A stretch of 63,185 bases of DNA, the filler included, from Lenisia limosa (lineage: Eukaryota > Protista > Breviatea): NCBI GenBank assembly GCA_001655205.1. It is 16 parts of 16 records of this genome, joined end to end, with 100 filler letters (N's around TTAATTAATTAA, not from the genome) between each part and the next. Parts side by side here need not be neighbours in the genome. Positions count along the whole stretch, not along the records: positions 1 to 10,101 come from LPNZ01004253.1; 15 more parts are not named here. One strand, given 5' to 3'. The position numbers and the translations under genes are program-made. This document shows, one piece after another, positions 1-10,101 of this stretch. Numbering within the stretch: position 1 is the first letter of the stretch; the number at the start of each line of letters is the position of its first letter. Under the pieces are notes generated by a model that worked only from the letters and a program-made list of their open reading frames with translations, made no database searches and was not told the origin of the DNA.

Positions 1-170
1 GTATTGTATAGTATATAGTATAGTATAGTATATAGTATTGTATTGTATAGTATAGTATATAGTATAGTATTGTATAGTATAGTATATAGTATAGTATAGA
101 GTATAGTATTGTATAGAGTATAGTATTGTAAATGGTATATAATATATGATATATAATATATGGTATATAG
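1..170. repeat. (TATAG/TATTG)n low-complexity microsatellite at the contig 1 left end
   Basis: Continuous gtatagtatatagtattg units; no coding signal. Confidence 0.85.
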
Positions 171-251
171 TACAGATAAAACTTGTTGAAGTTTACAAAA
201 ACCTTAACACAATCTCCAAGTCTGAAGAGAGGGGGGTGAAGGAACTTTGTT

Positions 252-700
252 ATGTGCACCAAAATACTAAAGTTGGTGGCATTGGTGGCAGTGGCAGGTG
301 GCAGNNNNNNNNNNNNNNNNNNNNNNNNNNNNNNNNNNNNNNNNNNNNNNNNNNNNNNNNNNNNNNNNNNNNNNNNNNNNNNNNNNNNNNNNNNNNNNNN
401 NNNNNNNNNNNNNNNNNNNNNNNNNNNNNNNNNNNNNNNNNNNNNNNNNNNNNNNNNNNNNNNNNNNNNNNNNNNNNNNNNNNNNNNNNNNNNNNNNNNN
501 NNNNNNNNNNNNNNNNNNNNNNNNNNNNNNNNNNNNNNNNNNNNNNNNNNNNNNNNNNNNNNNNNNNNNNNNNNNGTGGCAGTGGCAGGTGGCAGAGAAG
601 TCATGACGTCATCAGATTTATCCATGAAGTAGTGACGAGAAGTTCGAAAAATCGCTAAGTACAAATAATGTGCACCAAAAAACTAAAGTTGGTGGCAGTG
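252..700. repeat. Direct repeat ATGTGCACCAAAA(T/A)ACTAAAGTTGGTGGCA plus a GGTGGCAGTGGCAG minisatellite around an N gap
   Basis: The same ~30-bp motif starts at about 252 and 669; GTGGCAG units flank the N run 305-575. Confidence 0.6.
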
Positions 701-953
701 ATATGGGGATGGGTTTAGAGTACCCTGAAACAGTAAATATTTAATCTTCTTGTAATTAATGGAAACTGTTGGTAGTTATTAGGGTGAAACTGAAGAAAGG
801 GAAGCCCACAGCAAAATCCGTTACTAGCCTACTCTAGGCGATGGTAGCTGCAATGTTTTAGTTGGTAGCTGGCGTACTGGCTCTGTCGGGCTTGGTTGAG
901 GAATCTAAACAATGAGTGGGAAAAAGTGGAAAGAGGAAGTGTTGACAAGGATG

Positions 954-3900
954 TTACTGGCCTACTGTGGGTTCATCTGGGTCGTTGTCGTGGTGTAGTT
1001 GGTTGGCTAACTTCATGAAGGCGACCTGAGTGGCCGGTGTCGAAGATGGACGCTGCTGCTTTTTTTTCTTCGGTTTCTCGGCGGCCTTGTCCGTTACCTT
1101 CTTGGCAGCCTTCTTAGCGGCCTTCTTGGCTGCCTTGTCGCTGGCCTTCTCGTTGGCCTTCTTGGCGGCCATCTCGTTGGCCTTCTTGGCGGCCATCTCG
1201 TTGGCCTTCTTGGCGGCCATCTCGTTAGCCTTCTTGGCGGTCATATCGTTAGCCTTCTTGGCGGCCATCTCGTTGGCCTTCTTGGCGGCCTTCGCTGCCT
1301 TTTTCTTGGCAGTATTCTTGGCTGCGCGGAGGAGACTTTCTTTTCGCGCTTCTTGTTGGGCGGCGGTTTGGTTGGCGCGGTTGGCGGCGGCAGCGGCTGC
1401 TGGCCTATTTATGCGTTCGACTTGGGCGGCGTGAGAGGCGGCGGACTTGGTTGCCTTTACCCGCTTGGCGGTTTCGTCGGCGGAAAGTTGTCTAGCCATT
1501 TTATCGGCAGCGGCAGTAAGCTGAATGCGTGTCTTAGCGGCATCGGACTTGAGGTGTACACGCTTGGGCGACTTTGCCGGCGGGGGTTTGCTTGGGGCCT
1601 GGCGTTTGGCGGGACGACCCTGTTGGCTAGAGGGGATAAGAAGGTCCTTCTCTTTGTCTTCGTCTTCTTCTTCTTCTTCTTCTTCTTCTTCTTCTTCTTC
1701 TTCTTCTTCTTCTTCTTCACCGAAGGCTTGTTCTTCTTCTTCTTCTTCTTCCAAGTCGATGGACAGATTGGAGTCGTGTTCACGGTCCATGAGGTTAAGC
1801 TTCGGTGCAACCGCGGCGGCCTTGGTGTCCATAACGTAGTGGATGGTGCCGCTTTTCGGCTGCGCGTCTTTTAGAGGGTCCAGCACCTCGACAACCTTGT
1901 ACACTGTGTTGTTGAGAAGTACGCGGCTGTTCAAAGGCAAGCCTTCTGCAAGGGTGCTGAAGTGGTAGCAGCTAAGTTGCTCCGGGGAGAGGATGGCGAG
2001 GTCGTCGTCGGTGGCGGCGGCGGATTTTGGCTGCGTGGAGAGATCTGGCGACGGCGACCGGCGTTTTTGTCGCTTGCCGGTGGTCTTGGCGGCCTTGGCG
2101 GTGGCGGCGGAGGCAAGGTATTCCTCCTCCGAACCTGTGAGGCTGGCGTTGTCGTCGGCTTCGTTGCTAGCGGATAACGCAAAAGCCGACTCGGCAAGAG
2201 GGGTAATTCCCTGCGCGACGTCATTGCGGCCGTACTCTGCCCAGCCGGGAGGTGGCAGTGGGCCTTCTCGGCCTAGGAGGTAGTTGGCGTACTCCTTAGT
2301 CGGGCTTCCGTCGCCGGCAAAAATTGCGTGGACCGTGATGTGGCCGAGGTTGGCGATGAGGCCGTCGCAGAACAGTGGAACGACGAGGGATATGTCACCT
2401 CGATGGCGAGTCGTAGGGCAACCACCGTCGTGGCATGAAAACACGTCGGCGTTAATCTGGAGGATCGCCTCCTGGCGGCCGTTGTCGGAGCGGCGACGCG
2501 GTCCTTGCAGCACAATGTTCCGAAGGACGTTGTGTTGAACGCAAATGCGTGAGTTGGCGGCGTCAGTTATAGCCGTCCGTGTAGCACCAGCCGCCAATCC
2601 GGCAGACATCATCGGACGGCCGTACCTGGCAAAGGTAACCACCGTGGAGGAGTCGTCCGTGTTGGCTTCCAGCATGCCTTTGGCGTCCATGGCGAAGGCG
2701 AGGGCGTGGAGGCCGAGGGCGGCTTCTAGGGGGGAATTCCAGGCAGGAGCGTAGTCCTGGTCGGAAACGTCGTAGTGGGAGAAGTCGTGGTCAGACGGTA
2801 GGCGGGGAGGGGCGGCTGTGAAGGCCCACGGAAGGCTGTCGGAGTTGAAATGGAAGTTGTCCGGCAGTTCCAACCGGGGCAGGGAGAAGATATTGACAGT
2901 GTCCTGGGGTTTGTCGGACCAGCCTCGGCAGGCAGCGTCAAACCAACGGCTGACGACGCCCTTGCTGCGTTTCAAATCGTGGCGGCGAATTGCCATCCAG
3001 AACCTTGTAAGATTGACGGCAGCTGCGTCGACGAGGCGGGNNNNNNNNNNNNNNNNNNNNNNNNNNNNNNNNNNNNNNNNNNNNNNNNNNNNNNNNNNNN
3101 GTCGACCAGAAGACGGCGTCCCAGTCCATGACCAAAGGGTCACTGTCGGCCTGCTTGCCTGTCGGCTTCTTGTACACGTCCATGCAGGTGGCGGTGGCGG
3201 CGGTAATAACGGAGTTGAACAGGGCTTGGGCGGCAGTCTGGGGTGTCCACGACCCTGATATCGCCGGGAAGTTGAGGGCTCCAGTGTTCCAGCCGAGGGG
3301 GTTGCCGACGGCGGCGGTAAGCAGGACCTGGGACTGGTTGTTGCTGACAGCGAGGCTGTTGACAATGGCCTTAACGACGGCAGTGGCGTGTTCTCGTTCG
3401 TTCACTAGGAGTTCGTGGAAGAAGGACAGCAGGTCCTTGGGGAGGGACGACTTGGCACCGGCGAAGGGAGCGATCGCAGCGATGGCGGCAACGACGGCGG
3501 GAGTGAGGACGGCGACGTTGGAGGCGTAGCGGCCTTCTGCCTTAATAAGAACAGTCGCGTACGCCATCGCCACCAGGCAACTTGTTTTGGTTACCACCAC
3601 CTTGCGGTCGACAAGGCCTTGAAGGAACTCGTCGTGTAGGTCGGCGTTGTAGGCCGGGCTGGCGCGAAGCAGACCTGGCACCGCGTCAGGGCAGATAAAG
3701 ATTCGGTCGTCGTATAGGAGGTTCGTGTACTGAGCCCGGCCCCATCGCCGCTTCAGCGAGCCAGACCAAACCGCCGGCGTTTGGTTGGCAATCTTGCCGC
3801 ATTCCCGAAGCCAACGGCCGAGGAAGCTTCCAGGTAAGCTGCTGCAGTCTTCATTGCGCAGCCTCTTCGAGGCCAGTGCGACGGCGCATGGTGATCGCGG

Positions 3901-4810
3901 CGTCAATACGGTTCCGTTCGAAATGGCAGCCAGGAGGGCGGTGCGCGTCACTCCCTTGGGCCTCTTGGTGGTGTCGTCACTGCGGGAGGCCCTCTCACGG
4001 TAGGAGACACTTAGCGCCTTAGCTTCTTCAGCGGTGTCGGTTGCGTACGTCGCGACGTTAACCTTGAAGGCCTGTCGTTCTTTAATAGACAGGCCTGTCA
4101 GATACGGGAACATGGAGTTGATACTGTCGCGATGAACCTCCGCCACCTGCTCGTCGCTGAAGTAGCCGGCTGCAATGAGGAGGAGGTATGTAATATGCTG
4201 GCCGTTGAGGATGCCCACACGCTTGTGTAGAAGGCCGTCATGTGTGATGTCGAGGTCGTCGGCGTCGTCATGTGGCCGCCTGATCACGCCAAGGGCAATG
4301 TCGGGCGTACGTCGTGATGACCCACCAATAAGACGTACTGCCCTCACTAGGCTGAACTCCCGGTGGTTTACCAGGGCCGTGACCCCACTGGTCCAAGCCC
4401 TGTGCAAGTCACTGATTGTGACCGGGCCAGTCATTCCGACAGCACCTGTCACTTCCGCCTGCGGGTCGTTACCGGCCTCCGCCGTTCTCAGGTCTGTTCG
4501 CCCGGTGAATGTGGCCGCCGCCCCGTTGTTGTCAATGTTGATAATCACAGCGCCTCCAAGGTCGGGGTCTTCATGTACCGCTGAGTCGTCATGTGTCGTC
4601 AACATCAGCTTAGTTGTTAAGGCCGCTGCCGACAGCTCTTCTTCGACAACCTCCGGCACCTGGCTGTCGGCGTCTTCAATCACACTCTTCCACAACTGCA
4701 CATCGGCCTCGCTAGGTTCGCCGACCGCTACCTACACCAGCGTAAGAGATAACCCACCAACACAAACAAAACGGTACACCTCAGATTTGTTGCAAACAGT
4801 CGCTTACCAT
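954..4810 (-). CDS. Large unknown protein (~1260 aa) with an acidic tract and a histone-H1-like Lys/Ala-rich C-terminus; possible Bro-N-like DNA-binding segments
   Basis: Track ORFs 2938-4701 and 954-3365 are best read as one gene, broken by the N gap 3041-3100 whose length shifts the frame. The ATG at 4810-4808 is followed by a GTAAGC...TAG intron (4807-4732) and an in-frame exon from 4731 (VAVGEPSEADVQLWK...). There is a poly-Glu tract and (AKKANEMA)n repeats. Probable extra 3' exons lie at 904-833 and 765-715, via GTAGGC donors at 965 and 832. Confidence 0.7.
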
Positions 4811-4869
4811 AGTAGAATTCCGTTGTCAACCGCGATTGCTACTTGACGCGATCGTGGCTGAGATGCTGG

Positions 4870-5290
4870 ACGACAATCTCGCCTAAAGAGGTAAGCACCA
4901 AAGTTGGGGAAGGAAATAATTGAGGGCTACCTCCGCGGATTCCGCGGAGGTTTTAAAATTTCCAAAAAAAACGAAAAGACTGTCAAGTGCTTACAGGGTC
5001 TTGGCTGTGAAGTTGCTTGCAGTTGCCTGATACTGAACGACAATCTCACCTAAAGAGGTAAGCACCAAAGTTGGGGAAGGAAATAATTGAGGGCCACCTC
5101 CGCGGATTCCGCGGAGGTTTTAAAATTTCCAAAAAAAACGAAAAGACTGTCAAGTGCTTACAGGATCTTGGCGGTGAAGTTGCTTGCAGTTGCCTGATAC
5201 TGAACGACAATCTCACCTAAAGAGGTAAGCAACAAAGTTGGGGAAGGAAATAATTGAGGGCCACCTCCGCGGATTCCGCGGAGGTTTTTT
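4870..5290 (-). repeat. 167-bp tandem repeat = 55-nt micro-exon + 112-nt intron containing a 23-bp palindrome
   Basis: ACCTCCGCGGA-T-TCCGCGGAGGT occurs at 4929-4951, 5096-5118 and 5263-5285 (period 167). On the minus strand each unit has CTTTAG| exon |GTAAGC (exons 5216-5162 and 5049-4995). Confidence 0.9.
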
Positions 5291-5645
5291 TTTTTTTGTG
5301 GAAAATAAAAAAAAACTTCACGAGTGAACACATACCTTGGAACACACGAAGTCGTAAAAAGGGGGGTGATAATTGTTTTTTTTTTTTTAAATAGTNNNNN
5401 NNNNNNNNNNNNNNNNNNNNNNNNNNNNNNNNNNNNNNNNNNNNNNNNNNNNNNNNNNNNNNNNNNNNNNNNNNNNNNNNNNNNNNNNNNNNNNNNNNNN
5501 NNNNNNNNNNNNNNNNNNNNNNNNNNNNNNNNNNNNNNNNNNNNNNNNNNNNNNNNNNNNNNNNNNNNNNNNNNNNNNNNNNNNNNNNNNNNNNNNNNNN
5601 NNNNNNNNNNNNNNNNNNNNNNNNNNNNNNNNNNNNNNNNNNNNN

Positions 5646-5766
5646 AGCCGACGGCCCTTTTTTAGCCGATGGCCGACTCCGCGGAGGTGACCTGAACCAT
5701 TGTGTGGTTGGCTACAAACAAAAGGGCCGTCGGCTATCACGCCCTGAACTGAACTGAACTGAACTG
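5646..5766. other. Central hairpin (perfect 16-bp inverted repeat) followed by (GAACT)n
   Basis: AGCCGACGGCCCTTTT (5646-5661) is the reverse complement of AAAAGGGCCGTCGGCT (5720-5735). The loop contains a half-site CTCCGCGGAGGT. CTGAA repeats run from about 5745 to 5766. Confidence 0.8.
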
Positions 5767-5844
5767 GTGTCACCCAATTAACTATTTAAGCTTCTATTTT
5801 TGAAAAAAATATCATCAAAATAGCACGGCTCCTCAAGAACCAAG

Positions 5845-6105
5845 GTATGCTCGGCTTCCGTTTTCGTTATTGTTTCCGCGTAGGTGGCCCTCATATCTTT
5901 TTCCATCTTTGTTGCTTACCTCTTCAGGCGACATTGTCCTTCAGCAACAAGCAACTGCAAGCAACCATAGCCAAGACCACTGTAAGCACTGACAGTCTTT
6001 TCGTTTTTTTTTTTGGAATTTTGAAACCTCCGCGGAATCCGCGGAGGTGGCCCTCATATCTTTTTCCATCTTTGTTGCTTACCTCTTCAGGCGACATTGT
6101 CCTTC
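5845..6105 (+). repeat. Inverted, diverged copy of the leader repeat (163-bp period; 54-nt micro-exon + 109-nt intron with palindrome)
   Basis: TTCAG|GCGACATTGTCC occurs at 5927 and 6090. The exon 5928-5981 is followed by GTAAGC. The palindrome ACCTCCGCGGA-A-TCCGCGGAGGT is at 6026-6048. It is homologous to the reverse complement of 4870-5290. Confidence 0.85.
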
Positions 6106-6180
6106 GACTATAGTGCTAACGGTGTCCCTCCTAAGGGTGTGACTGAAACCTTTGTGAGTTTTTAACTGGTCCACGCTGCG

Positions 6181-9100
6181 ATGCAAGCTAATGACAATGT
6201 GGAGGAGGTTTGTTGGGGTGCTGGATCCTTTTAACTGCTGCAGCCGGTTGTGGCTTAAGTGTGATTTGTATGACTGAGACTTATGTTGTGTAGGTCACTG
6301 TCAAGATCCGTGTGGAGGAAGGCGGAGAAATTAGAATCCTTCCAGCCCTCAGGGATCTAATGGTTGCGCTTGACCTTCGTGTGACACAAGCAGGGTACGT
6401 AGTTCGCCAAGTGAGCAAGGACTGTGTGCCAAGCGACGTTGTTACCCGGCAAGGTGACCCAATACACATTACTGAGTTTGCACTACTGGTGCGAACGAGT
6501 CCAACTATCGTTCCAGAGCTGGAAAGCATCTTTCGGCGTGTATGTGAGGGATTAAGAAGTCTTTTTGTTTTCTGTAGTTGTTTTTCTCTTCTTTGACAAT
6601 TTGATTGTTTGTTTTGTTCCCGTTAACCTGTGTTTAGTCTCCAAGTATCCTAGAGAAGGACCTACCAACCTTCGTCGCTGGTGACGACGATCTCTATATT
6701 GAAGTACGGACCGACCTAGTACGGTTTTATGACGTTGACTACAGCTTTCAAGTTCAGGGTCCCGTGCCGACAGATTTTACTACAATGCCTGCCAGGCGTT
6801 ATCATACCCGGTATCCGGCTACGGAAGAGGAGGCCGCCGTCTTTGCGTCCAGATACCCGAGGCATGCCGGCCTCGAGGTACGACAACCCCAGACCAGTGC
6901 CCTCGACCATGTCTTGTCGACTCAGGGCTTGGTCGGAGCCGGGGCAGAAGATGTGTCAGTCATACTTGGCTTTGCGATGACACCATACGACGTCCGCCTG
7001 CAGCTCGCCGAGGATTCTGGAAACCGAAGCTACGCAGCGACTGGAATCGTGTATATCTATGGCGTGGCAGGCAGTGGGAAGAGTTTGCTGTTCAACCTTG
7101 TGGTTAGCGGTGTGTCGGATGAGGCGGTGGCCACTTTCCCTGGGGCGGACCGTAACTTCCCGCTAAGTGAGCTTTACGACGCACAGCATGGGCTGATTTA
7201 CCTCGCCAACAGCGATCTCAGTTCAGACCCGTCCGTTCACGCCGGACTCGACGTCGTTAAGAAGCTCGTTTTGAGCGAAGCCGTCTCGGTGGCCAAGAAG
7301 AACCGCCATTCCAAACGAGTAACCAATAAGAAGTTCTCGCTCCTGTTAACCGCCAACTTTCGAATGCCAGCGACTCCGACCGACCGTGACGCCACCGACC
7401 GTCGTCTTATCGTTATTCCCTTCCACACGAAGATCAATCCAGCCCACCTTGACGCAACCGTGGAGGGATGCCTCCAGCGCTGTGCTGGCGACGTGTTTGT
7501 GCACTGCGTGCGCGCGTATCACACCCGCATGGCCATGTACGAGGCTGGTGGCGTTGCCAGCCCCAACTGGGCCCATCACCTCTCATCCGATCACACCGCC
7601 GCCAGCAATAGCACAAATGCCGCCCTCGCGGACCTGGTACACGTCGCTAACGGAACAACAATGACGGTCAAGCGCCGAGCCGCCCTAGTGCGCGGTGTGT
7701 GTGCCATTAATCTTGATGAGGCAGCGCCATGCCTCAGTCGCGCCGCCGTGGTCAACGCGGTCACGTCTACCGTCTCCGAGGCCCGCGTCGGTGACAACGA
7801 CAATCCTGGTGACGGCGACCTCATCCGTGCGATTCCTACCGACCTTGCCTCGAAGTTTCGCCTAACGAGCGACGTCCTCAATGAAGCCTTCCGTCCTTAT
7901 CCAGTGGAACGTCTTAGTGTTCGGCGCAACAACTGTAGACGACTTCGCCTGCAGGTGGTTGACGACCCTGTTGCGGGACTCAAGCGCAGCCTCGCAGACC
8001 TTGCTGCCGACCTTGACGAGGACGACGACGGACGTCAGGAGGGCGCTGAAGGCATTCGGCCAGCCGCCTTTGTGCCCGGGCCTCAACCCGACGTCTTCCG
8101 GGCCACTGTGTCCAGGGAGAAGCTCGCCAACCTGATCCGCCGAGTCCGTATTTCTCATGTAGATACGGAAGGCAACCCAGTTGACGCCCCTTCCCCTGTA
8201 GCAGGTCGCCCCCGCCGTCGACCCTCCGGTCGTGGCACTATTAATGCGCCCATCGATATTGTCGACGAAAATTTGGACTATGGTAACTTGTCGCCCATGC
8301 ACAGTCCGCAGCTGAGACCATGTCTACCACTGGAGGAAGTGGGTGACCTCGACCTTCTTGAGTTCGCTGCCGAAGGCCCCCAAGTTCCAGAAGTTCCTGT
8401 TGAAGGCCCGCAAGTTCCAGAAGTTCCCGATGAAGGCCCGCAAGTTCCCGAAGACCACGTTGAAGGCCCGCAAGTTCCCGAAGTTCCCGTTGAAGGCCCC
8501 CTAGTTCCAGAAGTTCCTCGTGTTGCCGCCCCGCGCCCAGTCAAGGTCAACCGTCCTTCGATGCCGCCCCAACGAACGGTATCTACTAAAGATCGCCCCA
8601 GCCCTGAGTTCCCGTCGCCAAACTCCTTCCCGCGGACAGTCTACTTTGGAAAAGAACCAAACTTACAGAAGTTCCTCAAGCGTCCCAGGTTCGAGCCCGG
8701 AATATCCAGAACCGGGATAGTTGAGGGCGTGTATAAGCCCTTCAGAGGCCCAGCAAACTATATCGTGAAGTATGCTCAGCTCGACGACGGCCGCCGTCTA
8801 CTTGACAGTGAGGGAATTATGGCCCGTATGCCGACATGCCCTTCTTGCAGCTGGACGTTATCACCTCGCCCTTTCCGTGACTTCCCCAATTGGCACTGTG
8901 TCTACTGTCACGGGTCACCTAAGGTCAACTTCCCTGACTGGCCTGTCCTCACAGGCGACAACGATCCTGATTGCTCAGACACTCCAGCGATTAAAGACCA
9001 GCTCAGCCTTGCTCAGAAGTTCCTCCGTAGTATGGAGCTACGACTTGCGGGCCTTAGGGCGATCCAGTACCACTGGAGGGCCGTAACGCCTGGTACCGTA

Positions 9101-9784
9101 CCAAACGCCGCCCGCATGGCCGCAGCTGCTGTAGGTTTCTACTGCTTGATGTATACACTCTATATTTATACATCCATATTGTATTATACGTTGTGATAAA
9201 TTTGTTTATTTTCAATGATTTTTCAAGGCCGCCGCCGTCAAGCAGGACACTGTACAGCCCCGCCTGCCTCTACCAAACCTCGACATTCCTCCGAGTCCAA
9301 CTGACACGCTTGTAAGCGTACTTGGTGTTTTTATGTTTTTTTGATGGTGTCTCACTGTCGTGTTGATCCTTGTTCAGAGGTCACTCAGTCCCGAAATTTC
9401 GCCCTTTTCGTCACCAGTTGATAATGAAACAACACCACCGCTCACGGAATTAAATTCGGTATGTCTTTCATGATGTATTGGTCTGGTCTCCTTTATATGC
9501 TGAATGGTTTAGTCTCCTTTATATGCTGAACTCTCTTTGATGACTTCTTTTCAGACCGACAACGATCGTCGCCGGAATGTGGCGGTTACCCCTACTGCCC
9601 TTTGTGTATGCAAGGTCGAAACCTTACAAAGCATTCTCTTTTGTTTTGTGCCTTTTTCGCCACGGCTAATTTTTTTCAGTTTGACAGTGACAGTAACAGT
9701 GACGACGACTTTAACTCCCCGGTGTCCGTTTCACAGTGCAGCCAACGGAAGATCCCGAATTCTGCCGTCTCCGCTGAGTTTTAG
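6181..9784 (+). CDS. D5/P4-family SF3 (AAA+) DNA helicase-like protein, ~1030 aa, with a C-terminal C4 zinc ribbon; no primase domain visible
   Basis: Walker A IYIYGVAGSGKS (7061-7084), a divergent Walker B LIYLANSD, motif C FSLLLTAN (about 7340-7357) and arginine finger DRRLIVIPF (7397-7423) occur in the D5/P4 order and spacing. CPSC-x16-CVYC lies at 8837-8908. Inferred exons are 6181-6207, 6294-6539, 6638-9130, 9228-9311, 9378-9458, 9555-9605 and 9680-9784, all joined in frame by GT-AG introns. The start codon is uncertain (6181 or 6360). Confidence 0.8.
8372..8521 (+). repeat. Five 30-bp coding repeats (EGPQVPEVPV)
   Basis: GAAGGCCC recurs at 8372, 8402, 8432, 8462 and 8492 within the helicase ORF. 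Confidence 0.9.
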
Positions 9785-10101
9785 CTATGTTTACTATATT
9801 ATGAATTTCTTATACCTCTACCGGCATGGTCTCACACAGCTTGATGGCCATATGTGGATTACTATTTCCTCAAAGCTGTTATTTCAGTGCTTTTAACAAC
9901 TTGGGATATAGATCCACAGGTGTTAGAGAGAGTTTGCAGTGGTTTACAAGAGAGCGCGACCTGGAAGAACAAGGTTTACCACTAGATCATGTTTGAAAAT
10001 ACCTGATTCCAGCCCTATCTAAACACCCTGCCAGGCAATTAAAAGGCATTTCAGACTTTTTATTTTTACTTTACTGGCTTCCTACCCCCTTTTGAAGGCG
10101 A

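Follow-up and report, generated by a model that had tools for sequence, protein, structure and literature searches.

The window analysed here is a stretch of 63,185 nucleotides (filler included) from the Lenisia limosa assembly GCA_001655205.1, and its part LPNZ01004253.1 (window 1-10,101) carries a unit of two long genes that diverge from a central repeat region. One gene encodes a very divergent helicase of superfamily 3 (SF3) and the other a large orphan protein. The preferred reading, to which a probability of about 45% is given, is that the unit represents a small orphan family of nuclear selfish elements, in which the helicase would act on an origin-like centre and which would replicate and move. 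This reading is drawn from a combination of features: a conserved gene pair under selection, foreign-looking composition, host-type introns, copies that are diverged, disrupted or reduced to relics, residence in repeat DNA, and a control region resembling an origin. The unit is a block of ~9 kb (roughly 710-9960) rich in guanine and cytosine (GC), lying between AT-rich or repetitive flanks, and its left limit is likely near 703-716. GC content is 52-63% over both genes, and ranges from 17-22% (in windows including N) to 42-48% in the flanks and the centre. The main parts of the unit are as follows, in window coordinates.

954-4810, minus strand: gene of the orphan large protein, from open reading frames (ORFs), a splice model and continuity through a relative, P0002; includes the gap 3041-3100
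4862-5362, no strand: left arm of the centre, three direct units of 167 nucleotides with one perfect 23-nucleotide palindrome each, from repeat analysis
5363-5874, no strand: core of the centre, with the N run 5396-5645 read from positions 330-639 of contig L001
5875-6105, no strand: right arm of the centre, ~1.4 units of 163 nucleotides, inverted relative to the left arm, from repeat analysis
6294-9784, plus strand: helicase gene, a six-exon splice model with stop 9782-9784 and 1,022 codons

Two long GC-rich ORFs pointing away from inverted, palindrome-bearing repeats had been described in the original prediction, and ORF, GC and repeat analyses bear out this layout. The plus-strand ORF (6764-9196) has 810 codons, and two minus-strand ORFs (954-3365 and 2938-4701) are two frames of one gene split by the N run 3041-3100. 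The ORF cores had also been described as intron-free: they are indeed long, but each is the core of a spliced gene, since small exons lie 5' of both cores and, in the right gene, also 3' of the core.

A diverged second copy (L002; 9,453 nucleotides) holds the whole unit again: its two genes likewise diverge and its central repeats are of similar kinds, supporting the earlier claim that the two-gene unit is real. It encodes a 943-residue helicase (35% identity) and a 1212-residue orphan protein (55-62% identity), which diverge from a ~1.2-kb centre. The relatives, without exception, belong to a single MGnify-processed assembly, ERZ3820729, in which the window's own sequence is present too (contig L001, ERZ3820729 NODE_3217). 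Between the window and L002, the ratio of non-synonymous to synonymous substitution rates (dN/dS) is 0.21-0.25 for the orphan gene and ~0.3, with dS saturated, for the helicase gene; between two more distant copies of the orphan gene (L003 and L004), it is 0.40. At the level of codon substitution, these ratios show that the gene pair is under purifying selection.

The helicase model consists of exons at 6294-6539, 6638-9130, 9228-9311, 9378-9458, 9555-9614 and 9680-9784. It has no internal stops, and its five GT-AG introns are 65-98 nucleotides long with 26-39% GC; the 5' start is provisional. The positions of the first intron and of one intron 3' of the long exon are common to L002. Three regions are distinguished in the product.

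7001-7513, plus strand: P-loop ATPase core of the SF3 (D5/P4) type, from profile matches, tblastn and motifs
8372-8517, plus strand: in-frame 30-nucleotide coding repeat, 4.9 copies, rich in Pro, Glu and Val, from a repeat scan and L001
8594-9130, plus strand: conserved C-terminal helicase module, from alignment with L002

Along with Walker A, the core has an acidic strand resembling Walker B, a motif-C Asn that follows a hydrophobic strand, and a downstream Arg-Arg pair (Arg finger region); apart from the Walker-B-like strand, these motifs do not vary between the helicases of the window and L002, despite 35% overall identity. Five profiles match the long helicase ORF, all covering its residues 80-250.

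TIGR01613 (phage/plasmid primase, P4 family, C-terminal domain), E = 1.9e-10
phrog_7601, E = 9e-9
phrog_1156 (annotated as DNA primase), E = 3e-7
phrog_1829 (annotated as DNA primase), E = 5e-5
PF19263, E = 4.6e-4

These concordant matches, significant though all below curated cut-offs, support the predicted D5-type SF3 helicase and suggest assignment to a very divergent D5/P4 branch of SF3. Searches by tblastn with the helicase give only weak matches, at ~25% identity, to P4-family primases of phages and one plasmid. Word-indexed protein searches with the whole helicase and with residues 40-300 return only the near-identical P0001; this is weak evidence of absence because the known L002 paralogue is missed too.

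The helicase thus shares with the P4/D5 primase-helicases (P4-type proteins of phages and plasmids, poxvirus D5, and those of Polinton-like viruses and virophages) the P-loop core over residues 80-250, but differs from them in its sub-threshold scores, its ~25% pairwise identity and the introns of its gene. A linked primase is usual in those proteins, whereas no primase domain (AEP or DnaG-like) is detectable here: primase models give no match in the N-terminal exons or elsewhere among the ORFs. In addition, two parts of the helicase, a zinc-ribbon module and a long disordered stretch with repeats, are absent from the matching models. The disordered region, with its Pro/Glu/Val repeat, lies downstream of the ATPase core, and the C-terminal module includes a zinc-ribbon-like CxxC...CxxC arrangement at ~8834-8914 (weak Zn_ribbon_TFIIB match, E = 0.01). 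The number of 30-nucleotide units is one higher in L001, where the ORF product has 820 residues instead of 810, which reflects either copy variation or assembly collapse.

The left gene starts with an ATG (4810-4808) followed immediately by a 76-nucleotide GT-AG intron (4807-4732), and its main exon runs from 4731 to 954 with the stop at 956-954, giving a product of ~1,235 residues. The acceptor position is common to the window and L002. Within the main exon, the gap 3041-3100 appears as 60 N, and the flanking frames differ by one base. P0002 (1212 residues) spans it unbroken, with residues 11-544 corresponding to the upstream piece and 551-1138 to the downstream piece. As P0002 aligns without interruption, the left gene is continuous, with ~6 hidden residues and a true gap length of 2 modulo 3; judged from this alignment, 3041-3100 is an assembly gap and no gene break. 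Two regions of the protein can be set apart.

3101-4731, minus strand: conserved N-terminal region, ~540 residues, from phmmer and alignment A1
1075-2030, minus strand: C-terminal tail, from the sequence and alignment with L002

The N-terminal region is the only part of the orphan protein common to a distant subfamily (P0003 and P0004). A phmmer search with the N-terminal 533 residues of the protein, run in full against 1.84 billion representative proteins, gave four credible matches.

P0002, E = 5e-212, 63% identity
P0003, E = 3e-14, 26% identity
P0004, E = 2e-7, 26% identity
a 71-residue fragment, the fourth credible match

A fifth match, to a crystallin-repeat protein, was judged spurious. 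Among those 1.84 billion proteins, no relative occurs outside ERZ3820729. The orphan protein and three relatives match no Pfam, PHROG or NCBIfam model up to E = 5, and comparison of pieces and family profiles with Protein Data Bank (PDB) sequences yields only acidic low-complexity noise. The large protein, which had been described as unknown, is therefore an orphan. Its tail contains, besides a poly-Glu run (1657-1751), a small module (~1740-2030) that is kept in L002 and an eight-residue repeat rich in Lys and Ala (24 nucleotides, 7.6 copies, at 1108-1290). A chromodomain-like nature of the small C-terminal modules finds no support, as the four excised modules match no Pfam model at E up to 10, chromo, Tudor and related models included; the two modules also show no similarity to each other. 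With a conserved core of ~900 residues and four homologues in one sample, the orphan protein offers a clean target for a new fold or function.

The control region between the divergent genes is 1.5-1.9 kb long. Its palindromes (4929-4951, 5096-5118, 5263-5285 and 6026-6048) are perfect over 23 nucleotides with 11-nucleotide arms; the four occurrences in the window compare with none expected from 200 shuffles. As single-stranded DNA, the palindrome is predicted to fold at about -13 kcal/mol (z -5.8). The core has short GC-rich iterons, each followed by a T run, at ~21-nucleotide spacing (roughly two turns of the helix), with an inverted copy at 5720-5735; for a 90-nucleotide dyad at 5646-5735, the folding energy is -26.8 kcal/mol (z -6.3). 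Repeats of the pentanucleotide type (GAACT)n follow at ~5741-5765, and ~270 nucleotides of the core are duplicated. Two short motifs point away from the core.

5331-5340, minus strand: outward 10-nucleotide motif resembling a 5' splice site, on the orphan-gene side, from a motif search
5840-5849, plus strand: outward 10-nucleotide motif resembling a 5' splice site, on the helicase side, from a motif search

An identical pair of outward donor-like motifs is kept in L002 (4389, minus; 4937, plus), which suggests leader exons starting in the core. Each arm unit, read outward, has a pyrimidine run plus CAG and, ~56 nucleotides on, GTAAGC, resembling a 3' splice site, a mini-exon and a donor. The palindromes may accordingly sit in first introns. 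An 88-codon ORF (window 5847-6113, plus strand) runs through the right-arm repeats from a start inside the donor-like motif and is probably a repeat by-product.

The centres of the window (and L001) and of L002 are not alignable as a whole, but follow a common grammar. Both contain five or six GC-rich iterons with a common core, a T run after each and a spacing of 21-23 nucleotides, and in both, the iteron block lies between inverted pentanucleotide repeats. Palindromes of the window type and of the L002 type have the same outer five base pairs, whereas the inner stems differ. Three of the 11 pair positions differ on both sides between the two, and 98% of the cells are still paired. This fits three compensatory events, counted from two lineages only, and is consistent both with a hairpin and with a dimeric binding site. 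In L004, a related short palindromic repeat that contains this core motif occurs five times upstream of the orphan gene, at ~55-nucleotide spacing. Taken together, these features give the centre the appearance of a replication origin combined with a bidirectional promoter. Its co-varying palindromes and phased iterons constitute an explicit cis-acting grammar that can be traced across copies by sequence alone.

The metagenome contig L001 also covers this region. It is 100% identical to window 5646-10101 except for the one extra 30-nucleotide coding repeat unit noted above, and 99% identical to window 5067-5395, and has 310 nucleotides across the gap 5396-5645; this gap, like the one in the left gene, is harmless. 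The number of 167-nucleotide units is not reliably assembled, because the start of L001 fits two array registers about equally. The gap conceals the ~270-nucleotide direct duplication in the core (L001 200-660), which adds one palindrome, one outward donor-like motif and one iteron set.

In its way of working, the unit most closely resembles the polyomaviruses, papillomaviruses and circular single-stranded DNA viruses that encode Rep. As in these viruses, a gene for an SF3 helicase and a second gene diverge from a non-coding region in which dyad-symmetric sites and iterons lie beside A/T-rich DNA. The unit differs from them in having a helicase of the D5/P4 branch: there is no match to Rep, E1, large-T or NS1 models for the helicase at E up to 0.1 or for its N-terminal pieces at E up to 10. 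Also unlike these viruses, no HUH nuclease or origin-binding domain is recognised in the unit (no Pfam match in the helicase protein) and it has no capsid gene. The unit is moreover two to four times larger, is spliced in the host style and has at least one chromosomal relative.

Further members of the family indicate selfish-like dynamics, with two deep subfamilies, a frame-changed copy joined to host-like DNA and a ~60-residue relic. L003 and L004 represent a distant subfamily (B) of the orphan gene, with 68% mutual identity and 23-26% identity to the window. Both contigs stop in upstream repeats, leaving any helicase partner of subfamily B off-contig. The orphan copy of L004 has one frame change, and past the end of its homology to L003, the contig continues into ~5.9 kb of host-like DNA that is ORF-poor, has 40% GC and lacks a helicase gene; its ORFs have no Pfam match. 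The relic (L005 1553-1735; 39-56% identical to subfamily A) is isolated in unrelated 40%-GC DNA. As L004 joins this host-like DNA and L005 holds the relic, at least part of the family is chromosomal.

Subfamily B has some features of its own. Long T, C and G homopolymer runs occur upstream of its orphan genes (L003 1-60 and 240-260; L004 300-335 and 410-425), and these genes have a short conserved first coding exon that begins with a basic stretch. Separately, L004 7790-7941 and L005 6984-7132 share ~150 nucleotides at 74% identity, probably a dispersed host repeat, consistent with one genome of origin for both contigs.

The contig names give a coverage of 500 and 148 for two contigs and of 24.5-28.6 for L002, L004 and L005. 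The high figures hint at extra copies, a hint that is unsafe since the contigs hold repeats and the assembly is a metagenome. Scans of IMG/VR and of JGI metagenomes give no confirmed relative, and literature searches find no description of such an element.

A possible mechanism can be outlined for the selfish-element reading. The iterons and palindromes would be recognised by a protein that the element encodes, either the orphan protein, or the helicase outside its ATPase core, or the two together. The SF3 helicase would assemble at the easily melted T-rich core and unwind it. The host would supply priming and synthesis, such that the unit would be copied more often than its surroundings, and copies would settle in chromosomal repeat DNA. 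The orphan protein might supply DNA or chromatin binding or a joining step. We infer every step that follows the initial binding.

Several points weigh against the selfish-element reading. All helicase matches fall under the curated cut-offs (40.1 versus 108.7 bits for TIGR01613; 21.2 versus 27.6 bits for PF19263), and the L002 helicase protein barely matches the profiles. AlphaFold2 models give no fold-level support, with a predicted local distance difference test score of 32.5 for the helicase core (single sequence) and 31 for the orphan N-terminal region (four-row alignment). The iterons and palindromes could be mere transcription-factor sites of a bidirectional promoter. As there is no primase, polymerase or recombinase, replication and integration would need functions from elsewhere. 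The outer flanks show neither terminal repeats nor conserved ends nor recognisable target duplications, and the contig ends are without overlap, with no circular overlap in any contig. All data are from one organism or sample, and the high coverage of 500 and 148 may reflect repeats or different organisms in the metagenome.

One reading in the original prediction had been a compact replicon or mobile element outside the virus and element families named there. This stands as regards a two-gene unit devoid of hallmark genes, but not as regards a plasmid or virus state; at least part of the family is chromosomal. A further and bolder proposal is that the family forms an unrecognised class of minimal nuclear selfish replicons, with two genes, an SF3 helicase of its own and an iteron-palindrome origin. 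Such replicons would alternate between an amplified, possibly extrachromosomal, state and a chromosomal state without known polymerase, integrase or capsid, and the orphan protein would have a new function in maintenance, joining or packaging. The proposal is tentative and, on balance, probably incorrect in at least some part, so that the status of a new class is here a possibility. If the reading as a selfish replicon holds, the few types of selfish DNA in eukaryotes would gain a minimal, host-spliced, helicase-only replicon, and D5/P4-type helicases would be able to anchor an element without their usual capsid, polymerase and integrase partners. This would also bear on the traffic of viral replication modules among viruses, plasmids and transposons.

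The DNA on either side of the unit is as follows.

252-715, no strand: left neighbour, a Y-type tandem array of GGCAG-rich units with a TGACGTCA-centred palindrome, from the sequence; N run 305-575
9960-10101, no strand: right neighbour, the edge of a 156-nucleotide tandem satellite (X), degenerate from ~9960 and exact from 10040

Three more units of satellite X are present in L001 5146-5586. In L002, 53 nucleotides beside the orphan gene (9399-9451) are 100% identical to satellite X on the same strands, and a diverged array of the left-neighbour kind lies at 1-213 next to the helicase gene, whereas the window array adjoins the orphan gene. The two-gene block is thus inverted relative to the same two kinds of flank; the simplest, though uncertain, reading is that copies insert into satellite DNA either way round. 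The satellite stretch is 100% identical although the window and L002 elements differ by 40-65% in protein.

Insertion either way into the same arrays is what would also be expected of a cut-and-paste or replicative DNA transposon. Here, the orphan protein would be an unrecognised transposase or recombinase, the helicase an accessory and the centre only a bidirectional promoter, with the true ends located beyond the gene 3' ends. The several diverged copies, the relic and the frame-changed copy in one genome, the junction of L004 with host-like DNA, and the few acidic residues of the orphan protein that are invariant across four sequences are all compatible with this explanation. It is nevertheless considered unlikely: at E up to 5, models of transposases, integrases and recombinases match none of four family members, conservation of cis-elements is strongest in the centre and not at the termini, and no target duplications or conserved termini are recognisable, with terminal inverted repeats and shared terminal motifs in the outer flanks of the window, L002 and L004 not above shuffled controls.

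Spliceosomal introns and purifying selection in both genes, together with the coverage figures shared by L002, L004 and L005, would suit host genes, that is, a domesticated family of viral ancestry whose nuclear genes share a bidirectional promoter and have been duplicated a few times. Such an origin appears quite improbable in view of a GC content far above that of the surrounding DNA and the location of the unit in satellite arrays instead of among genes. Retention of the iteron-plus-palindrome grammar with compensatory change, the presence of relics and a disrupted copy, and the lack of an orthologue in any other organism of the searched libraries argue in the same direction.

D5/P4-type helicases are common in giant viruses, Polinton-like viruses and virophages, and the contigs are short and end in repeats. 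Both points favour another reading of the original prediction, a remnant of a larger endogenous virus, with the remaining genes off the contig. This view is now very improbable, as two copies at 35-62% protein identity have no genes other than these two, with non-coding arrays on either side, and L004 runs from the orphan gene into its ~5.9 kb of ORF-poor, 40%-GC DNA. The original list of absent genes stands: Pfam, PHROGs and NCBIfam give no match to a polymerase, a primase, an integrase, a transposase, a capsid protein or a packaging ATPase. Across the loci, 50 kb in all, there is likewise no capsid, polymerase, packaging ATPase or integrase. Like Polintons, Polinton-like viruses and virophages, which often have a D5-like helicase, the unit is eukaryotic and would be integrating, but unlike them, it is without a protein-primed polymerase, a retroviral-type integrase, a jelly-roll capsid pair, a packaging ATPase and a protease. 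The defining genes of these groups have no match in the window or in L002-L005, and the IMG/VR scans contain no relative. Endogenous giant-virus fragments differ as well, since the flanks of the unit are tandem arrays or ORF-poor 40%-GC DNA with no viral core genes.

The arrangement proposed earlier by analogy with MuDR, a joint of two head-to-tail copies or a circle with genes reading inward from terminal inverted repeats, has scarcely any likelihood, even though the centre is built of inverted arms (160-230 nucleotides) and the genes start just outside them, because satellite or host-like DNA and not the 3' end of the partner gene lies past each gene 3' end, the contigs have no overlap at their ends, a transposase of the MULE or another type is absent, and the inter-arm core has its own conserved iterons, which would be superfluous in a bare end-to-end joint. 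The comparison with MuDR/Mutator elements leads to the same distinction. These likewise have two genes and long inverted repeats, but the unit has no DDE transposase of the MULE type and no inverted repeat between its outer flanks (~200 nucleotides in Mutator, which also has a 9-bp target duplication), and its repeats are central, with genes that diverge from them and end in flanking DNA.

Other known systems are also distinct. Dictyostelium Ddp2-type plasmids and the yeast 2-micron circle are compact nuclear plasmids, multi-copy as the unit may be, and have one or two large genes plus large inverted repeats that serve replication or maintenance, a likeness drawn from their general organization rather than from sequence comparison. 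Unlike these plasmids, no tyrosine recombinase model matches the proteins of the unit or their relatives, no contig is circular and the copies of the unit are flanked by satellites or host-like DNA. Helitrons combine a Rep HUH protein with a Pif1-like helicase of superfamily 1, whereas the helicase of the unit matches SF3 models only, with no HUH match. So far, the unit fits no known class of transposon, plasmid or virus.

Scans of all loci with Rfam and for tRNA genes give no match. At the left end of the piece, outside the unit, window 1-172 is a microsatellite of the (GTATA)n type with higher-order periods of 12, 17 and 27 nucleotides.

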